Origin: Paragordius varius | Lineage: Eukaryota > Animalia > Nematomorpha | Assembly (NCBI GenBank): GCA_964247055.1 | Contig: OZ176053.1 | Location: 11,346,001 to 11,410,000 of the forward strand | Direction: 5' to 3' | Length of the DNA stretch: 64,000 nucleotides | In this document: positions 4,101-59,738 of the stretch, piece by piece | Layout of the letters: each line of letters begins with the position of its first letter | Position numbering within the stretch: the first letter of the stretch is position 1 | The notes under the pieces: model-generated | What the model was told of the DNA's origin: nothing | Databases searched by the model: none | The model's input: only the letters and a program-made list of their open reading frames with translations | Translations under genes and position numbers: made by a program

Positions 4101-7100
4101 CAAGTAATATAAGGAAACTACATATATTATTACTTTCAAATTTAATCATTACTTAATTTTATGGATTTGTAGATTCTTGGACCATGTATCCGTTGGATAA
4201 GTAATTTTTTATGTTATACCATTTGCAACACACTTTAAATTTTGTTGTTTTTTTGACAAATACTATTCGTGTATATTAAAATTTAAATTTAAACTACTGA
4301 GTGTGATAAATATGATATTTTGGTCCATTTAAAATCCTGTTTTTCAGCTACATTGTTTTATTGATGATAATGTATTTTAATAAGCCCAAACATGGAATCT
4401 TTTTTAGCATGGGTGAAGAGCTAAATGCACCAAATTTTATGTAACCACGTTTTTTTTTCTTTTATATTAATAATATTATGAGAAATGCTAAATATAATTT
4501 TGTGAATGATATAAATATGTAATAGTGAAAATGTATGGGTTGTATTCCACATTGTTTTTTGACCTTTCAGATATCTGGCTACATATAAGGGTGTTTTAAT
4601 TATCCAAGAGGATAATTTTTATTAAATAAAACGAAATTGTATTATGATATACAATTATCAAACTGTAAGTATATTAATATATTGAACAAATTTTTTACAT
4701 TTTATAAGTGCAGTCAAATTTGGATAGTTTTAAAACCGAGTAGGAGTTAATTTTAAAATAAGTCAAAATTTTATTTTAGAGTTAATACTTAATTTCAATT
4801 CATATATACCAGCTTTTTAGTAATAAAAACAAATCAGTATAAAAACACACAAAAATTTTGAGATGATAATTATTTACGATTTTACGTTTATATTTTTTTA
4901 ATATTGCGCCTAAAAAGCCATAAAATATCTATTGATCGCCCGATATCCTGGATTTTTTATAATTTTATATAAAATTTATATTGAACCGCTTTTAATTTAG
5001 TTCTCTTCTATAACATTTAGTAAAGTGCTAAATTAGTATTTGCCATATAATTAACTATTATTTACGATATTACTCAAATTAAGACTAAAAATATTTTTAG
5101 AACAATTTAAGGAATATGCAAAACGATAGTATAAACAATGAACATCTACTGCTTGATGGTATCAACCAGTGATTTAAACCGAAACCATTATATAATAGGA
5201 GCACACCGAAATTTTTATGAAACATTTTTCAAAAACACCGCCCATTATTTTTAGCACCGACTGTGCAGTTATCAATAAAAATGGATATTTAGAGAGTCTT
5301 TTGTAAATTTCTGTAATTTAAGAAACGCAAAATATATCTTTTGGACATAGTTTAATATTGCCATAACCACTGACTATTTCTTACCCAATTTAGTCAAGTA
5401 TAAAATAATTTAAAATTATTAACTTAATTTGATATCTTGAAAAGATGAATCCACGCACAAAATAATAGCGAAAAGTAAATTTATTTTGTCGAATATTATA
5501 AATAGATATAATTTAAATATTGCCAATAGACTATTGTAATGTGACATTAAGTTTTCACTATTGCATTAATAAAATTATTAAGGTTAGCTGTGAATTAGTC
5601 AAAATAAAATATGTAAGTATTAAATTAAGGATAAAAAATTATGGCATGTTTGTTTAAAATATTAGAAAATAAAAATTATAAATTTATCATGCATATTTTT
5701 TCTTCCTATTTTAGCTCTATCCATACAAGTACGCTTAAAATTTAATTTGATTCAATATCAAGGCATTTAAGTAAATCATGATAATTTAAATATTACAAAA
5801 CTTTAAACTAAAATTGGGTTATAAAACAAGCTCTTGATCACGCTTGGCACATTTATAAATGATTGTATTTAAAATTTTGGGTCCTACACATTTCGGAAAA
5901 TTGCGTTGAAACCAATAGTTTCCATTTCAATAAATATATGTGGCATATCTTGAGGAGGCTATTGAAATAAATAAAATTTTTATACTCTTTTAACCAACGT
6001 GTGAAAGACTCTTATTTGCGAATAACGATGGATGCATATTTTTTTGTATATGGGATGGTCTATCCAAACATAAAAGCAAAAATAATAAAATTCCCTTACC
6101 ATGATCATGAGTTATTAGAAAATATTTGAGACGATTGGAGTTATTCTATTAAAAAGAACAATTTCTTTGTTTGGAGGCGCATTTTACATCTCGGTGTTTA
6201 TACCCAAAGCCTAATTTTAATAAAGCACTCAGTTATAAACGTAGGGTCAATCACAAACTCCATATTTCTAAAATTTTTTATTGGTTAAAAATTATTTTTT
6301 ACTTTGACAAAAATTTATGGGGAGGAAAAGCCAATGAACATAGGGGACAATTGAAAAATGGGATGAATATACATGCAGTAAAATAAAAAAAGAGTTTTTT
6401 GTTCTAAATATCCAGAAAACGTAAATTTTACAACCCAATTTTTTTAATGTTAAAAGTTTACTTCTGAATAAAAAATATTTGTTGAAAACAGTTAAAAAAC
6501 ATTCATAATCTATTGATTTATGGCACTTTATTGGATTAATTATGTTAATTGCTAAATGAATATAATTGTAAGATAGAGAGAATTTTTTATAGCAACAATT
6601 TTAGTTATAATATTTTATAGATTTTTATTATGTATTTTATTCGTACGTATTCATTATTGGTTTAGAGATTCCCGCTAAGTATTTCTTTTGATGTATTTAT
6701 TTCCATTGTTCTCCTATTAACACCAAAAATGATAATATATTTATTTTGTATGTTTGTTAAAATTATTAGGAAATGGAAAAATAGATTTTTGTATCTGAGA
6801 TGAAAGATAGTGGGAATGAATATATTTTTAATGTAGTGTTAAAATCCTGTGTTCTATATGGTATATATATGTGTGGATTAATCAATAAAAATTTTTAGTT
6901 AAAGTTTATTATTATACATAAATATTCATTAATACATAATTTATAAAAAGCGTGTTTTTAACCAATACATTCTCAATATAAATTCAATCAACCATTTATT
7001 TTTCCGATTTATACCTGTGATATCTTTAATTATTTTAGTATTTTTAAATTGTTGTTTTTTGATTGGAAAATTTAACGATATCATTAATTCTAAATGGAAT

Positions 7101-21702: not shown

Positions 21703-23450
21703 GTTTTTATATCAATATAAAAATATATGTATAAAATCATTAAAGATACCTATCTAAATTATTATAAATTAAATTGTTTTAGCTATATATTAACAAAATT
21801 AAAATAAAATAGCTACCGCAAACACATTTTAATTAACAAAGATCAAATTTTTTATTGTCCGAAATATCGTGCTAGAATTACAGCTTATAGGGTATAAAAA
21901 ATCCAAAAATTTTCTTAGCCCCTCACATCTGGCCTCATGCGGGCTAGTTCCGTCATTAATGGGATAATCAAAACGTATCAGGTTTTCTTATATAATCTCA
22001 TATGCCCTAAATGTATTTTTGGTCAATAACAACACAGTTATTCTTGAAGTTTTTTGCATCTGTTATTTTCTCTGAAAATAATACAATATATATTGTGTAC
22101 CAAAAATTGCACCATATATGGCTATTTATTAATTCAGAATATACGTTAATCGGTGATTCTTATACAATCGATTTTTTAGCCAGGACAAATAAGCGTCGCT
22201 TTGTCTCGTTCTTTTCTTGATATTATGGTAAAAAAATATACCGCAATATCATGCGGGTTAGTAGTAATAGTGATTACATTCTAATTTTACTCTTATATTT
22301 TTTGAATTTATCAGGATTAACTGAATAACCATTTAATTAATTAGCATATTAATCCCAAACAAAATGTCAGGACCAAAATACATAGTGTGTGAAATTTTGG
22401 GTACACAAAGTCTATATTATTTTGGTCTTTCAATAAAAAGCACCACCAACTTTCAGAATCCAAAAATCTTGTGGTTCAGGTTTCAGAGCGATTCAAGGCC
22501 TAAAATCTATATTAAACCACCAGCTGTTTTTAAAGATTTTTAGTTAAATGTGATATAAATGCCATTCGTTTTTATTTAAAGCTCAATTTGCACATGGTTA
22601 CCATATATTAAAAACAAAAGCATGATCCATAAACGAAAAAAATTATTTTTAGCATATTTTCTTCTTGTGAAAGTAGCCAACAAGCCTAATACTAAAATCG
22701 ATCCCAAAATAAAACTATTACTTCTATGGTCAATATTGTATTTTCAATTTTTTAATCGCAATTTCGACGCACTCTTAATATTTGTTTTACATTTTTATAG
22801 GTTGATTGCTAGGTCCAAGGCAATCTGTCTTAAAATAATAACTTGACAAAATATGATATAATATATGTATAAATTTAAATAAATTTTAGCTAAAGAAATA
22901 ATATTTGAATACATATAAACTAAATATATATTATAGTATAACCTTAATCATATTTGATTGTTAAAGTTAATTTAAACATATAAGCCTTTTAATAATAAAG
23001 ATATCGACATAATAAATTTATTTAAATATCTCACGTATCTTTTAAATTTATTTGCAAAACTCACTTAAACATTATTACACAACTAATAAAAAAATAATAA
23101 TGCGTTTTGTCCCAACCTTGAATCGACTATTTAACTCAATCTACATAAAACACCTCATAATAATATATGATTTATTGACACTTTCATCTATTACATTGAA
23201 TGCAACTTATCAAAAATTATTACCATACTTGCAAAAAATGTACACTTATTATGACAAATCGGTCATATATAAACAAAATCATACATACACATCAACCTTT
23301 TTTTATAAATGTTACGGATATGTCCTTTCGTTAATCAGTTATGACAGTTTATTTAGAAAGAGTTGTATAGTATACCGAGATAATCGACAAAAATTAGATT
23401 TCAGAAGTCGTCCCAACAATCATACTCTATCACCTTTAACCAAAGCATTA

Positions 23451-26032
23451 ATGTTAATAATCGTCATGATTTGTTTTAGGATAAAAACCACAAAATGTTT
23501 ATATGTTAAAGTGGGGAACGAAAATATATTTAATGAGCGCTGGTCTTATCACGGTTTTTTAGGGCCTTCGGTTTGGCCCATACTGTTTCCAGATTTTTGT
23601 GATGGAACAACCCAATCCCCCATAAATATTGACACAGAACATGTTGTATACGACAAAAGTTTAACCGGTCTTAAAACTGTATTTGCTAAGATTGACGATG
23701 TAAAATTCAGTCTTGAAAATAATGGACATACAGGTTTTGGATAAGATGTTAATTATTAAAACTAACTATATTGGCATATAAAAAATTATTAATTTGTATC
23801 GTAAAAACAAAATATTATAATACATAGATAGGTCCTATAAAAAAATTATATCATTAAAATTTCTAGTTAAACTAAAATTTTTGGGCAAAGAAAATGAAGC
23901 ACCATCCATTAGCGGAGCCGGATTACCCGGCGTATATCGCACATCCGAAATCCATTTCCATTGGGGGAGTAGAAACTCTAAAGGCTCTGAGCACACCATA
24001 GACAAAAGATCATATCCGCTTGAAATGCACATTGTTAATGTCAAAGATATTTATTACCAAGGAAACGCATTTAATACATCTATGGCATTGAACGATCCAG
24101 AAGGTTTGGATTATATAGTGTAATTATGCAAGAACTCACTATTTTGTGACTGAATAAACCTAAGAGGCATATTAATTATTTTTGGGATGTTTTAATACTA
24201 ATTTAAAAATATCATTGGTTATTTATTCGGATGACATATTTGATAAATTGTATGTATCCTTTATATCGAGGTTTTTCGAAGTTAAACACTGTTCTTTTTT
24301 AAATTTAGTATTTGGCATCCATCGTAAATATGATGTCAAAGTTGTTAATTTTTTTTAAAAAATAATCGTATTTTTAATAAAATTCAGCGCTAAAAGATGC
24401 AAAAATATTTTATGAGTTGGGACCCGGTTGCCTTTGAACCATGGAAAATATTTTGCTTTGAAATAAAGTAATTTTTATTACTGTAAAAATTGAAAATATA
24501 CGGACTAAACGTAAAATAAAGATAAATATATTTTTTAAAGGACAAACATACTTTTTTAAACCTAAATTTTCTCCATAAAAACTATTTGATTACAATCGTA
24601 AAATATATTAATTGATTGTGTTACCTATATACATCTCTCTTTTATATTTTTCAATTTTAAATGATTTATATATAAAAAATCAAAATTTAAAAAGTATGGT
24701 TGTATTTCGAAAAATTTTGTCTTTATATTTTCACATTTTTCCGTACGATTTCAATTTTTACTGTAATTATTTTGGTTTAAATAACTAATGTTGTCAATAA
24801 TGAATATTTTGCTTTGTAAGAAATAATGTAGTCTATATTAAATAAATTTATTATTATACATAAAATACATTTTTAACTAAAAATAGAAAAGGGCCAAGGT
24901 ATAACGAAATCCCCATTCATACATATATATAAATCTAGAATTAGCCAGATGAACAAATATTGGAAAAAACGGTACCGCCATTTAATGGCGAATCCCCATA
25001 CAAATGATAATGATGATAATATTCTATCATTATCATTTGTATGATCCTTTTTATAATTATTTTTTTTTGAAAAAAGGGCTGGCTGTCTTAGGTGTGCTTT
25101 TTGAAACTGGAGCTTACAATAAGGGTTTTGCGGAAATAGCGAAAAGTTTAGATCTTATTCCATATCATGGAGATTCTGTAAATTTGCCACCAATTTTTCT
25201 CAGAAAATTACGCTCTTTCTTTCCACAAAACATACACGATTATTACAGGTAAATATTTTTTTCTTATATTATAACCAAATAAATACTAGCAATTTGTTTT
25301 GTTTTCAAATATATATTCAAGCAATGAAATGACTGATTATAAAAATTTCAAACTAAAGTTGGGAAGATACATATCTATCATGATTTGTAAGTTATGTTAA
25401 AAAATAAGTTATATCTGAAGTTTAGTAAACCAATTCTTGTCCTTATAAAGCATTATTAATATGTCCTTTGTCCTGCTTCCTCATAATAACGAGATCGTTT
25501 TCGGCTAAATAGAATGAAAAGGGACATTTTGTGAATCCTATTATTTATTAAAGCAATAATTTTTGATCATATATCTGGAACAGATATAACACAAAATTAA
25601 TATATAAAATGCAAATATTTTTCCTATAAACCTAAATGTTGAGAATTGGCTACCTACCACTTTTTGATTACAAATAAAATGACCCATTTAAAATATTACT
25701 CCTAAAATTTAACCGGATTATAAAATTTTTATTTTTTTATATATAGATATAAGGGCTCATTGACAACTCCAGATTGCAATGAGGCTGTTATTTGGACAGT
25801 TTTTGCAGAAACCGTTAAAATTTCTCAAGAACAAATGGATGCCCTACGCAAAGTAAAATCAACTAAAAAATTTGCCCATGCTCATGAAGATATGGTTGAT
25901 AATTTTCGACCACCTCAACCATTAAATAACAGAGTCGTAAGAACATCAATTAAACAAATGGCATATCCACCTCCACTCGATATAGATGAAAATCCGAAAA
26001 ATGCACCCGATAATGATTATCAGCAACCTTAA
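23451..26032 (+). CDS. Alpha-carbonic anhydrase, probably secreted and catalytically competent
   Basis: Exons 23451-23733, 23867-24103, 25077-25248, 25747-26032 splice in frame; motifs WSY, CDGTTQSPINI, NNGHT (His64), EIHFHWG (His94/96), GSEH, EMHIV (His119), YKGSLTTPDCNEAVIWTVF, DNFRPPQPLNNR. Start may instead come from an upstream exon using the AG at 23478-23479. Confidence 0.93.
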
Positions 26033-27170: not shown

Positions 27171-27628
27171 CTCTAAAATATATCATAATCTACACATATA
27201 GCCAAAACAATGGGTGGAGTGATTAAATTTTTTTGACTTGACAAGTTTTTCAAGTCATGGCTCGCTTTCATGTGATACTAAAAACATTAGAGGAGAAGAC
27301 ACGCAATAAAACATGATTCGAGGTGATGAAAAATCATATGAACAACTAAAACTTGACAATTTTGCAAAAGTGGTATCACACTTGACAGATTTTAAAATAT
27401 GGATAAAATTATTTTGGAAATTATATTTGATATATTTTAAATTTTATATGTAGTTGGAAGGTTTGTTAATGTTATAAACTTTTTAACGGTAAATGACGGA
27501 TTGATTATGTTTTGTAATAGCAGTATCCGTAAGATAATGATAAACGAAAACTAAATAGAAAATTAATTGAAAGTAATATTTATTAACAGAAATTATAAAT
27601 AATATGTAAAACATTTTCGTCATTAGTA

Positions 27629-27670
27629 ATCGTAGACTAGTTTCGTGCTTGTTAGACTCATCAGTACAAC
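27629..27670 (-). ncRNA. Minimal type I hammerhead ribozyme motif 1
   Basis: GUUGUA-CUGAUGA-GUCUAACAAGCAC-GAAA-CUAGUC/UACGAU; stem I 6 bp with two G-U pairs; stem II weakened by a 1-nt deletion. Confidence 0.75.
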
Positions 27671-27896
27671 TCAACTATTTTTGGGGTTCACACATCGATT
27701 TCGTTTATATATCCAACTTTGCCATTTTGGTATAAATGCAGTCGGTATAGAAATTAAAATTAAAATTGATTGCCAATCATGAAATTTAAACAAAAAATTC
27801 GAAAATAAACTGAAATTTAACACTAGGTTTAACCGTAGATTTAACCAAAATTGCAAAGTAAATATATATACGAAATCGATATGTGGAAAGCACAAA

Positions 27897-27939
27897 GTAG
27901 TACTGATGAGTGCAAATGAACACGAAACTAGTCTACGAT
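27897..27939 (+). ncRNA. Minimal type I hammerhead ribozyme motif 2
   Basis: GUAGUA-CUGAUGA-GUGCAAAUGAACAC-GAAA-CUAGUC/UACGAU; intact core, 3-bp stem II, stem I 5 of 6 paired. Confidence 0.8.
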
Positions 27940-28339
27940 TACTATTGACGAAAGGGTTTCACTCATTTATAATTTCTGTTAAAAAATATACTTTTATTTA
28001 ATTTTCTATTTTATTTTCGTTTATCATTATCTTACGGATTTAACAACTGTTATTACAAAACAAAATCAATCCGTTATTTACCATTCCAATATCATTCTTA
28101 TTTTATGTTTCTTAACAAAATAGAGTGCTTCTTAATTATTTAATTGATTTCCATGAAATCCCTAAGTAGCCATACTCTCGGTTACATAGTGTTTTCAGTT
28201 TATTTTCAAATTTTCAGTTTAATTTTCAAGAATTTCAATTAAATATAATTTAAATTCGAATAACCGACTGCATTTATACCAAAATGGCAAAGTTGGATAT
28301 ATTAATCGATATACGGGAAACCCCAAGTCAAATAGTTGT

Positions 28340-28382
28340 GTCTTACTGATGAGTGCTAACAAGCACGAAACTAGTCTGCGAT
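28340..28382 (+). ncRNA. Minimal type I hammerhead ribozyme motif 3
   Basis: GUCUUA-CUGAUGA-GUGC(UAACAA)GCAC-GAAA-CUAGUC/UGCGAU; intact core, perfect 4-bp stem II, palindromic ACUAGU stem III, stem I with one mismatch. Confidence 0.82.
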
Positions 28383-29229
28383 TACTATTGACGAAAGGGT
28401 TTCACATTTCATTTATAATATATTCAATTAATTTTCTATTTAATTTTCGTTTATTATCTTACGGATTTAACAACTGCTATTATAAACTTTTTATTTAATA
28501 ATTTTTGGCTAATAAACCGATTCAAAATGGGTGTATACAAAAGAGGATAAAATTTAAGGAGGCCATGCTAAATGTATGATGCATTTATATCCTAAGTTCT
28601 ACATTCCATAAGCCCACGAATTTGCAAAAATTACAGATATATTTTTAATGTATTTTCAATAATCATACAAAAAAGGTAAACATTTTGGAAGAGTGAATTT
28701 ATTGTTAGTGTTATTGAAAATTTGATTATTAATATCTGTAACACATACGGTACAAATTTGAAACTTTGTTCGCTAATTCGTATAAAAACACAATTAAATT
28801 TATAAAATATCTTCGCTATAATTAACAAATTTTATTTGGTAGATTTAAAAATATATTTTGAATTATATTTTGAATAAACCTATATTTTGTCAATTATTCA
28901 ACTGATCGCTATAGGTTAGATAACCTAAAAAGGTATATATTAATTTTATAATAATCTCTTCCTAACTTGATGAACAATTGAAAATCGCTTTAAAATTTAA
29001 TTGATGAAAATTTCTTAAATGAAAATATATCTATCTAATTAAATATTAATCTTGTTTGAAATTGTCAAATATTCGTTTAAATTCATAGACGCTAAAAGTT
29101 ACTTCATATTAAAACTGTAAAGCATTTTTTTCCTTATAACTTTATTTCAAACGTAATGTTCAATAAATTAAAAATAATAAGTTGTTATATTTTTTCGAAA
29201 AAAAATATTTTTAGATGAGAACTCCGAAA

Positions 29230-57000: not shown

Positions 57001-59738
57001 TAATAGACTATACCATAAAGAAATAGTTGATGAGTTATATTAGCCCAAAAACACATAATTAATTTTACCGGTAAATTTGAATTGTTTTGCTTTATAAGTT
57101 TTAAATTAGCAGCCAAAAAGTAGATTAGATTGTATTGATTTTTGATTCAATTCTTTTAGGTTTCAAAATAGCCATGAAATGCCTCGATTCTGGACGGATT
57201 GGGATTGCTGCTCAGGCCTTGGGAATTGGTCAGGCTGCCTTAGACCTGGCTATTGATTATTCTATGAAACGTAAGGCTTTTGGTGCACCCATCAGCAAAT
57301 TACAGGCTATACAGGTATGGTTTTTACAAAGATATTTATAAACCACTAAAATATAATAACGCCTGACGGCTAAAAACCATTTTTTGAATTTACCTAATAA
57401 GGTCTGATTGTTATTTAATTCAAAAGTACTCAAATTACTAATACTTTTTACCTCAAAATTTGATATACTATATATACCATACCATTTACAGTTCAAATTG
57501 ACCCTTAAACAATTCAAATCACCAGGTCTATTTGTTATTTAATTTAAAAATACTTAAATTAATTTGATATGCTATCTATACCATTTACATTTCTAATTGA
57601 CCCTTGAACAATTCAAATTCACCCCTAAAAATATATTATGTGTTTTCGAACTAATGTAACTCATTATTAATATTAAATATATCTTTATGGCATAGTTTAT
57701 TATTTTTTCGGTATTATATTAATTTAAAACAAAGTTTTTATTTTTTAAAAATGTAAATATAGGTAATTTTTAATCTTAAAAAACTTATATTTTATTTTAG
57801 GATGAATTTGAATTGTTTAAGGGTGAATTTGAATTGGTTAAGGGTGAATTTGAATTGTAAATGGTATATATTAAATTTTTAAATTCGATCAATTTAAAAT
57901 GCGATTATTTTATTCATCATTACTTTTTAGTTATTTAATCCGTATATTTTAGATGCGATATTTTGATATATTAAATAGGGTATAGATTTGGATTTAAAGC
58001 ATTTTTATATATGTTTTTTTAGCTAAAACTTATACTTCATACTTTCCTCTAATAGTATGATTATTGCATAATAAAAATGCTTTTTAGCTTAATATATATA
58101 TATATATATATATAAATATATAATTAATATTATTATTATTATTTCAAAAATGGTGTAATAATTTGGCCCCATATCGGGTATTTTTTCCATTTTTTGCATC
58201 TATATAAAATTTGCAATTTGGGAAATTATAAATTCTTTAGGTTTTTTTAATAAATTGTTCAATTTGATTTAATTATTAGAAATGTAAATTTTTAATATTA
58301 ATCATCCTTCTCAGTCAGCTCTGGGTAAGTTAGTAGATTTTAAACTGTCATTAGTGTCCACTAACCTTTTAAAGAAGGGTGAATGAAAACCACAGCCTCC
58401 ATATTTTTATTAAAAACATAAAATGCCAATTTTATAATTACATATATATATATATACAATGCCATTATGTTTAGTTTAAATTAGCCGATATGCATTGTCG
58501 ATTAGACGCGGCAAGATTGCTGACTTGGCGTGCAGCGCAATTGTATGATTCCATTCGAGCTGATGGTATAAAAAATTTTATTACTGTAATGATATAACAC
58601 CCTTAAAATATTGTGTAATGCAAACGCTTTTTTTTAAGGTGGAAGATTAGATAATATCGAGATATCCTTGACTTTAAAAAGGGACAAAAATATAATGTAA
58701 TCTCATAATCTAGACTAGATAATACAACTTACACGTAATTAATCTCTAATTTATATTTAATTACAATTACAATCGGTTAGCTTATAAAGATAGTGGTGAT
58801 GCAGGCGGCATTAAACCAAAGAGTTTTACAAAAGAGGCCGCCATGGCTAAACTTATGGCTTCTGAGGCTGCAACTTTCGTTACTCATCAGGCCATACAAA
58901 TTTTGGGTGGTATGGGGTAAATAATATTTTCTTTCAACAATACATCTCAATTTTATCAATTTTTAGTTATAATTATATAAATATAATTCAGCTAAAATTA
59001 TATAAATTTATTATGATATTTCGATTACTACAAGTAATCTTTGTCAAACGTAAAAAATAAAATTAAAATATAAACTAAAATTTAAATTATAAAATAAAAA
59101 TATGTAATGAGATATATGAAACTAAAAAAACATGTGTGTATTGTTAATAAGAAAAAAGTTTGTAATGTTATTAATATTGTTGAGGTCCTTCTTTCTGTTC
59201 ATTATATTTCCTTCTTTGTTAATATAAAAATTTTCCTTTAATATTCTTTTTGTTCTCTTTTCCTCTCTATCGATAACTTCGGCATCCCAGTTTGTTTTAT
59301 GTTTGCATTTAAAGGCATGATATGCCAAAGCCGAATCATTTGTTTTATTCTTGCTAACTGCCGTTTTATGTTCTTTTATCATGACATCTAGTCCTATTTT
59401 TGTTTGTCCTATGTATACAAATTTGGTCTTGTTTGGATGGAAAAATTATAATGATTTCGGACATTTTACGTACTGGTGCGACCAATATCATAAATAACCC
59501 TATTTTTACATGAATACGATAATAATACATATGTTTTTACAATAGTCAAACGACTCACATAAATTTTTACTAAAATATCAATACCTATACCATATTATTA
59601 TTTGTTTAAAGGTATGTTAAAGACACCCCGGCAGAAAGACATTACAGGGATGCCAGAATCACTGAAATATATGAAGGGACTTCCGAAATCCAACGATTAG
59701 TTATAGCAGGAAATTTGCTCAAAGAGTATGCTCAATAG
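54072..59738 (+). CDS. ACADS: Short-chain specific acyl-CoA dehydrogenase, mitochondrial
   Basis: Exons 54072-54260, 54288-54635, 55141-55330, 55764-55868, 57160-57314, 58475-58565, 58781-58916, 59612-59738 splice in frame; motifs [84 protein letters not shown] (catalytic Glu); Arg/Ser/Thr-rich N-terminal targeting peptide. Confidence 0.95.
55937..56230. mobile_element. MITE family A copy inside a (TA)n tract in an ACADS intron
   Basis: (TA)n-CCATTTACAGTTCAAATTCACCC...GAACTGTAAATGG-(TA)n. Confidence 0.9.
56297..56613. mobile_element. hAT-type MITE in an ACADS intron
   Basis: GGGTGTCCAAC left and GTGGACACCCC right, with GTGGCCC subterminal motifs. Confidence 0.55.
57473..57868. mobile_element. 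MITE family A: end fragment (57473-57523) and full copy (57577-57868)
   Basis: TATACCATTTACATTTCTAATTGACCC...GAATTGTAAATGGTATA; another internal fragment at ~56905-57090. Confidence 0.85.
59013..59445 (-). mobile_element. Penelope-like element 3' remnant (GIY-YIG endonuclease and decayed hammerhead) in the last ACADS intron
   Basis: Open minus frame 59445-59122: [67 protein letters not shown]; downstream UUGACAA-A-GAUUAC(UUGUA)GUAAUC-GAAAUAUC. Confidence 0.85.

Follow-up and report, generated by a model that had tools for sequence, protein, structure and literature searches.

A probable non-autonomous hammerhead retroelement with Penelope-style insertions in the genome of Paragordius varius

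What do several hammerhead ribozyme motifs represent when they lie close together in an animal genome and face in both directions: ribozyme genes, separate copies of a repeat, or parts of a single mobile element? This question is raised by a 64-kb stretch of the Paragordius varius genome (the window; all coordinates given without a locus or contig name are positions in it), which belongs to contig C4 of an assembly of 110.6 Mb in 44 contigs (~26% GC) and contains three type I hammerhead motifs in one region, two on the plus strand and one on the minus strand. A preliminary description of the window, made from its letters alone, had read them as a cluster of three minimal hammerheads at 27483-28490, each in a repeat copy of its own, belonging to a non-autonomous element related to retrozymes or Penelope and able to give self-cleaving RNA from both strands. 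Our analysis leads us to regard 27486-28479, with considerable confidence, as one old insertion, made in the style of Penelope-like elements (PLEs), of a retroelement that is both non-coding and non-autonomous and belongs to the kind known in metazoans as retrozymes without long terminal repeats (non-LTR retrozymes). The observations on which this reading is built are the motifs, a dispersed family with its copy number, a target-site duplication (TSD), variable 5' truncation, fixed 3' ends, an inverted arm and a one-sided tail of ~32-35 nt.

Three motifs in one insertion

All three motifs lie where they had first been placed (Table 1), read CUGAUGA-helix II-GAAA-CUAG-UC and retain the conserved type I catalytic core (C3-U-G-A-N-G-A9, G12-A-A14, A15.1-U16.1 and H17 at the cleavage site). 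Across the 110-Mb genome a core pattern of the form CTGATGA-N6-30-CGAAAC-N2-6-GTC has 182 matches, against 1 for the reversed pattern used as a control, and a chance origin of the motifs is thereby excluded. A covariance model (R1) built from 29 distinct genomic copies recovers exactly three sites in the 64 kb, which are the same three; since its training set included these sites, their scores rank the preservation of the copies and are not independent detections. On this scale, where intact copies reach 105.5 bits, copy 3 scores 100.5 bits, copy 1 79.7 bits and copy 2 58.7 bits, with 12 non-standard pairs marked in the last. The state of the helices is as follows: 1) copy 1 has a good proximal helix I and a helix II damaged by the deletion of one nucleotide, a G; 2) copy 2 has a helix II of only 3 bp and has lost its distal helix I; 3) copy 3 has an intact helix II and a helix I with one C-U mismatch. 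The initial impression that the defects of the copies are complementary was, as regards helix I of copy 1 and helix II of copy 3, largely right.

The three motifs are not borne by three independent repeat copies; they belong to one insertion, 27486-28479. It is bounded on both sides by the same 14-nt sequence (TTATAAACTTTTTA), the two repeats adjoining it exactly where similarity to the family described below stops. Hence, of the cluster as originally delimited the motifs stand, and its division into separate copies gives way to a single insertion plus its TSD. The insertion is composed of an inverted, 5'-truncated arm on the left and a direct arm on the right, their junction at ~27843/27844 being approximate. 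The left arm ends at the long end seen in the family (...AATCCGTCATTTACCGT) and the right arm ~30 nt earlier (...AACAACTGCTA), the extra 3' sequence of the inverted arm forming the tail. A direct repeat (D1) with a spacing of 443 nt confirms the distance that had been given between the two plus-strand cleavage sites, between which one full unit is contained. The unit is non-coding and of low GC (~0.25-0.27), with no open reading frame (ORF) reaching 90 aa inside or next to the element, and within 6 kb there is none of that length resembling a reverse transcriptase (RT) or an endonuclease (EN), as had already been remarked. The repeat search revealed no LTR-like long terminal direct repeats beyond the periodicity of the unit, neither a primer-binding site (PBS) nor a polypurine tract (PPT) having been specifically searched for.

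The window copy is among the most diverged in its family. The other copies show a mean pairwise identity of 93%, rising to 99.5%; against these, the window unit reaches ~88% in a gapped alignment, and 81-86% in BLAST comparisons with more than 30 other loci. Judged from its sequence, this copy is old and decayed and is probably no source of RNA circles. The release of a 443-nt unit-length RNA from this locus, as earlier envisaged, seems unlikely in an old, decayed copy whose copy 2 ribozyme is damaged, and so does self-cleaving RNA from both strands, because the minus strand has a single ribozyme without a partner in cis with which to form a dimer. A few kb upstream of the insertion lies an ORF (23052-23744, +), probably a host gene, with a C-terminal part that looks like an exon of a carbonic anhydrase (…SPINIDT…).

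Table 1. Positions of the hammerhead motifs, the parts of the insertion and a PLE remnant in the 64-kb window
Feature	Position	Strand	Evidence or remark
Hammerhead copy 1	27615-27684; core 27635-27664; cleavage 3' of C at 27635, minus strand	-	core pattern match
Hammerhead copy 2	27883-27953; core 27903-27933; cleavage after 27933	+	core pattern match
Hammerhead copy 3	28326-28396; core 28346-28376; cleavage after 28376	+	best-preserved copy
TSD, left copy	27472-27485		exact 14-nt match to 28480-28493, at the element boundary
TSD, right copy	28480-28493		exact 14-nt match to left copy
Inverted 5'-truncated arm, unit positions ~240-443 then 1-152	27486-27843 (right end approximate)	-	blastn vs typical and window units; inverted repeats I1-I8
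One-sided tail, ~32 nt of extra 3' sequence, inverted arm only	27486-27517	-	comparison of arm ends
Direct arm: part of a unit, a full unit, then ~105-125 nt from the start of another	27844-28479	+	blastn vs typical unit; direct repeats D1, D3, D4
Full 443-nt unit between plus-strand cleavage sites	27934-28376	+	spacing 443
5'-truncated coding PLE remnant, C-terminal GIY-YIG part; not part of the insertion	59125-59424	-	88% identity to residues 689-788 of the 788-aa ORF

The repeat family and its ribozyme

The insertion is one member of a family (family A) that is widely scattered in the genome. A BLAST search with the 443-nt unit, in which 40 of 410 candidate places were scored, located at least 139 pieces spread over all large contigs, and a genome search with the R1 model returned at least 150 matches, all above 85 bits, with at least 40 at the top value of 105.5 bits. 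The repeat unit is ~443-455 nt long, and units follow each other with a period of 443 nt in the window and of ~441-453 nt elsewhere. Copies are short (~0.3-1.3 kb), carry three hammerheads or fewer and comprise, in each insertion, parts of units and at most two full ones. The anatomy of the family, read at 30 loci, shows that: 1) the arms start at variable positions of the unit, which is to say that they are 5'-truncated, and end at positions ~120-130 or 152-167. 2) TSDs, in the form of exact boundary repeats of 11-16 bp, are present at 10 further loci. 3) In nine of ten clean two-armed loci one arm is long (...AATCCGTTCATTACCATTACA) and the other ends ~35 nt earlier (...AACAACTGTTA). 4) The arms cross the cleavage site up to three times (locus L009). 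Dispersal, 5' truncation, fixed 3' ends, TSDs, inverted arm and tail together bear out the view, expressed in the preliminary description, of a non-autonomous hammerhead retroelement related to retrozymes and Penelope. Conservation among the copies, measured per 30-nt bin, is 0.96-0.97 in the hammerhead region and 0.90-0.98 in the rest of the unit; we rejected it as evidence in either direction, the difference being slight. In the same table, the column comparing the window with the other copies is distorted by partial copies.

A predicted hairpin (ACGGATT...AATCCGT) occupies unit positions ~101-141, corresponding in the window to 28034-28074 (+) with an inverted counterpart near 27497-27535, and recurs in the other family copy that was folded and in the arm ends of two-armed loci. 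It sits where the arms end, with the short 3' end in its loop and the long end ~11-20 nt after it, and may be a candidate for the site that is recognized for priming.

In the typical sequence of the family, helix I consists of 6 bp beside the core, an internal loop (UGU/U) and 6 further bp; helix II has 5 bp and an AACA loop; and helix III is the single pair A15.1-U16.1 closed by the palindromic tetraloop CUAG. This is a type I topology, with helix I open and helices I and II around the core, and the Rfam model Hammerhead_HH9 spans the whole of copy 3 from end to end (28.4 bits, E 1.3e-4). The minimal hammerhead (min-HHR) of PLEs, in contrast, lacks both helix III and loop III and has 7-8 bp in helix II and 4-5 bp in helix I, whereas the helix III of the canonical metazoan type I hammerhead is weak and palindromic, which allows an active dimer to form from two paired copies (PMC4209133). 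By these definitions the ribozyme is of the canonical metazoan type I (retrozyme) form, and the original designation of the motifs as minimal hammerheads, of the type found in the pseudo-LTRs (pLTRs) of PLEs, has to be given up. As its helix III comprises one A-U pair and the palindromic CUAG loop, a stable helix III requires two ribozymes to pair through ACUAGU.

The genome also harbors another hammerhead repeat, family B, which looks unrelated to the first; its core is CUGAUGA-GUCCACAACAAGGAC-GAAA-CGCG-UC, and it has a very long helix I of 6 bp, a loop and then about 19 bp. Roughly 15-20 copies of it are present among the first 100 listed matches of the core pattern, and, like family A, it occurs in inverted pairs, e.g. 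L037:4618-4649 (-) and 5196-5227 (+). At loci L031-L040, which represent this family, no PLE ORF lies within 5 kb, the only long ORFs being a LINE-like pair (long interspersed nuclear element) at L033 and one ORF at L038. The former are overlapping ORFs of 435 and 545 aa (L033:1065-3858, +), located ~1 kb from a family B hammerhead, and the start of the first resembles, by reading alone, the AP-endonuclease (apurinic/apyrimidinic) of a LINE-type retrotransposon.

When families A and B are aligned, five of 12 pairs are found to have changed on both sides and to be still paired: three in helix I, one in helix II and one in the center of the palindrome of loop III (CUAG to CGCG). In this alignment 94.6% of the cells are paired, against 19-50% with partners slid by 1-3 columns, and the covariation score reaches 0.436, where the slid controls give 0.131 or less. 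These compensatory differences support the proposed hammerhead fold, and the preservation of the palindrome between the two families speaks specifically for a dimeric helix III. Minimum free energy (MFE) folding of ribozyme segments of 71-76 nt recovered helices I and II in copy 3 and in the typical copy, with part of the core paired differently, and co-folding of two ribozyme copies did not return the ACUAGU intermolecular helix; thermodynamic folding is hence uninformative on the dimer. The cleaved unit RNA is predicted to fold so that helix I joins its two ends, with z-scores of -2.66 (the 443-nt window unit) and -4.78 (a typical copy); such an arrangement would be compatible with ligation to a circle and proves nothing.

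Penelope-like elements and the route of insertion

A compact coding PLE is found at L048:3704-7051 (G000:C1:4914203-4917550), almost all of its unit being taken up by an open frame of 788 aa. This ORF itself gave no match in Pfam and PDB sequence scans, and hmmscan did not recognize it; its identity as a PLE follows from a six-frame match of PF01541 (GIY-YIG) at about residues 677-761 and from its homologs, animal proteins of ~700-850 aa with RVT_1 and, in some, also GIY-YIG. The insertion signature of this PLE is the same as that of the hammerhead element, comprising a 2485-nt partial tandem, an inverted arm, a one-sided tail of ~31 nt and a 12-bp TSD (TAATGTTTTATA). The ORF has 59 six-frame matches in the genome, which fall into at least four identity classes (~95-100%, 65-67%, 39-41% and 31-36%); what had been taken for a Penelope endonuclease remnant at 59.1-59.4 kb of the window is indeed a copy of its GIY-YIG part (Table 1). 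The three lower classes represent at least three further PLE lineages, e.g. at C5:11238034-11240154, C7:2026537-2028615 and C10:2825758-2827611, several of which have open frames of 700-890 aa and adjoining inverted partial copies. PLE termini were read for family 1 only (L048-L050). The L048 PLE has no detectable hammerhead, which is unusual for a PLE with a C-terminal endonuclease.

The anatomy of the insertions supports mobilization by PLE machinery. By analogy with the published accounts of retrozymes and PLEs, from which transcription, cleavage, circularization and the participation of a PLE helper are all inferred, an active master copy would be transcribed as a multimer, and its hammerheads, acting as dimers, would cut this multimer to unit length. 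The ends of the monomer would be held by helix I and then ligated, and a template spanning the cleavage site, either such a circle or the uncut multimer, would be reverse-transcribed at a staggered chromosomal nick, with a PLE supplying both the RT and the GIY-YIG endonuclease for this target-primed reverse transcription. Since the ends of the arms fall 120-165 nt beyond the cleavage site, which the arms may traverse repeatedly, the linear cleaved monomer cannot have been the template; reverse transcription must have been primed at a specific site within either a circle formed by re-ligation or a multimer left uncut. A bolder proposal, which we put forward only tentatively and consider rather doubtful, is that the insertions are genomic footprints of rolling-circle reverse transcription of a circular ribozyme RNA by a Penelope-type RT. 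If the circle were the template, the one-sided tail of ~35 nt would correspond to the distance by which the two arms differ in their priming sites, and the insertions would offer sequence-level evidence for a step of retrozyme mobilization that is still called hypothetical in the literature.

Several observations weigh against reading the locus as a retrozyme inserted with the help of a PLE. Rfam gives a divided answer: no family reaches its gathering score anywhere in the 64-kb window, the match of HH9 to copy 3 (gathering score 52) and a weak match of Hammerhead_3 to copy 1 (18.4 bits, E 0.97) being obtained in E-value mode. The HH9 score falls short mainly in helix III, consisting here of a single A-U pair with a CUAG cap, a form which that model penalizes. 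The arms of the window copy are only ~79-81% alike, which is low beside a 14-bp TSD that is still perfect; this combination is possible (about 5%, by a rough estimate), or the arms may never have been identical. The covariation of stems across genomic copies that had been anticipated is seen between families A and B and not within family A, where 0 pairs change on both sides and variation only breaks pairs (94.7% of cells paired, over 18 pairs and 29 copies). This is as expected of neutrally decaying dead copies, and the support for the fold therefore comes from the single comparison of A with B, which is effectively one independent comparison. On the side of the helper, PLE family 1 has no hammerhead, by regular expression or by Rfam, and no detectable sequence similarity to the 443-nt unit, so that among the PLE termini read no helper shares sequence with the unit. 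As to the repeat beside a PLE RT, for which a genome search had been suggested, no PLE-coding match on contigs C1-C4 lies within 5 kb of a listed hammerhead, with one exception. The latter is a PLE RT fragment at L026:2159-2779 (G000:C4:5138032-5138652, -), 51% identical to residues 464-657 of the 788-aa ORF and located ~240 nt beyond a family A retrozyme; probably the retrozyme is nested in, or inserted beside, an older PLE copy.

Could family A then be a deleted derivative or solo pLTR of an autonomous PLE, which has lost its coding part, and not a separate retrozyme family? PLE pLTRs do carry hammerheads, PLE insertions share the tandem, inverted and tailed layout, and a preprint reports that retrozymes co-exist with PLEs and places them as sister to PLE pLTRs in Xenopus (bioRxiv 10.64898/2026.07.22.740005). 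However, coding sequence was found in none of the 30 family A loci, which likewise contain no RT or GIY-YIG ORF; the unit is dissimilar to the one PLE family whose termini were read, itself devoid of hammerheads; the listed PLE-coding matches on C1-C4 are not beside hammerheads; and the ribozyme has the canonical retrozyme architecture instead of the min-HHR of metazoan PLEs. We therefore regard a derivation of this kind as improbable. The head-to-tail order of the units, and the existence of satellite DNAs with type I hammerheads, might alternatively point to a hammerhead-bearing satellite of the newt satellite 2 sort, in which unequal crossing-over or segmental duplication of DNA, and not retrotransposition, would account for both spread and rearrangement. 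The TSDs largely refute this explanation, since the copies each have their own, of 11-16 bp, read in the window and at 10 further loci, in addition to a variable 5' truncation and a fixed 3' end, and the copies are short and dispersed over all large contigs, with no long arrays seen; it is accordingly extremely unlikely.

The remaining alternative concerns the present state of the locus, which might still be active, its plus transcript being cut at 27933 and 28376 to yield a 443-nt circular RNA, possibly with a function in the host. For this speak the three intact catalytic cores, the near-perfect copy 3 and the predicted fold of the unit, which apposes its ends. Both cuts are needed for the release of the 443-nt RNA, however, and the one that generates the 5' end of the unit depends on copy 2, with its shortened helix II and missing distal helix I; hence the locus is probably inactive, and its place among the most diverged copies of the family points the same way. 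We give the possibility of continuing activity very little credence, and the preferred reading remains that of a single old retrozyme insertion.

Comparison with known systems

Metazoan non-LTR retrozymes consist of non-coding, low-GC units of 150-450 bp with type I hammerheads, have TSDs of >4 bp and co-exist with PLEs; in hammerheads of the axolotl HHR_Amex1 type, helix III is a single bp with a palindromic tetraloop, and helix I contains an internal loop facing loop II (PMC7229834). The element described here shares with them the head-to-tail type I units, the lack of coding sequence, the low GC, the forms of helices III and I, the TSDs of >4 bp and the co-existing PLEs. Its unit of 443-455 nt is at the top of the published size range for metazoan retrozymes. 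It differs from them in its genomic arrangement: whereas metazoan retrozymes form long tandem arrays, the family found here occurs as short, dispersed insertions of ~1-2.5 units with an inverted arm. In this respect it resembles PLEs, the insertions of which are highly 5'-truncated, are often partial tandems, and have an adjacent inverted 5'-truncated copy and a tail of 30-40 bp at one end (PMC8557442). The family fits every one of these points, having the partial tandem, the inverted 5'-truncated copy and the one-sided 30-40-bp tail, as well as a TSD. With the hammerheads of PLE pLTRs (PMC4209133) it further shares a helix III that is palindromic and so lends itself to dimeric action. Unlike autonomous PLEs, the element has no RT/GIY-YIG ORF, and its ribozyme is not a min-HHR, given its helix II of 5 bp, its helix I of 6+6 bp and its loop III.

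Among the Rfam families, the best match is Hammerhead_HH9 (RF02275), an amniote intronic type I hammerhead with the same layout of helix I, internal loop and helix II; it differs in having a helix III stem of 3 bp and in occupying a conserved single-copy intronic site, whereas here helix III is 1 bp and the setting is repetitive. The plant LTR retrozymes have type III hammerheads in LTRs, a PBS and a PPT, 4-bp TSDs, high GC and Ty3/Gypsy helpers (PMC4918200). Both they and the present element are non-autonomous, and the plant hammerheads excise a unit-length RNA able to circularize; in contrast to them, the element found here has type I hammerheads, a 14-bp TSD, low GC and no LTRs that we could find.

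The class of the element, its type of ribozyme and its presumed dependence on PLEs are already published (PMC7229834; PMC4209133; PMC8557442; bioRxiv 10.64898/2026.07.22.740005), and the locus in the window, a fossil copy of a known class of element, adds little when taken alone. For annotation it implies that the three ribozyme motifs should be entered together, as a single transposable-element insertion, and not as ribozyme genes. The family as a whole is a cleaner case than most, because it is made up of short, dispersed, TSD-flanked insertions instead of long arrays, and hence both ends of each insertion can be read. Published support for the mobilization of animal retrozymes by PLEs has so far been mainly their co-occurrence and the similarity to pLTRs in vertebrates; a Penelope-type inverted arm and tail on a hammerhead element that encodes no protein, matched by the same signature on a coding PLE, provides independent support at the level of the insertions themselves. 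Thus, set beside the known systems, the element displays the defining features of metazoan non-LTR retrozymes that were tested and lacks those of an autonomous PLE and of a plant LTR retrozyme.

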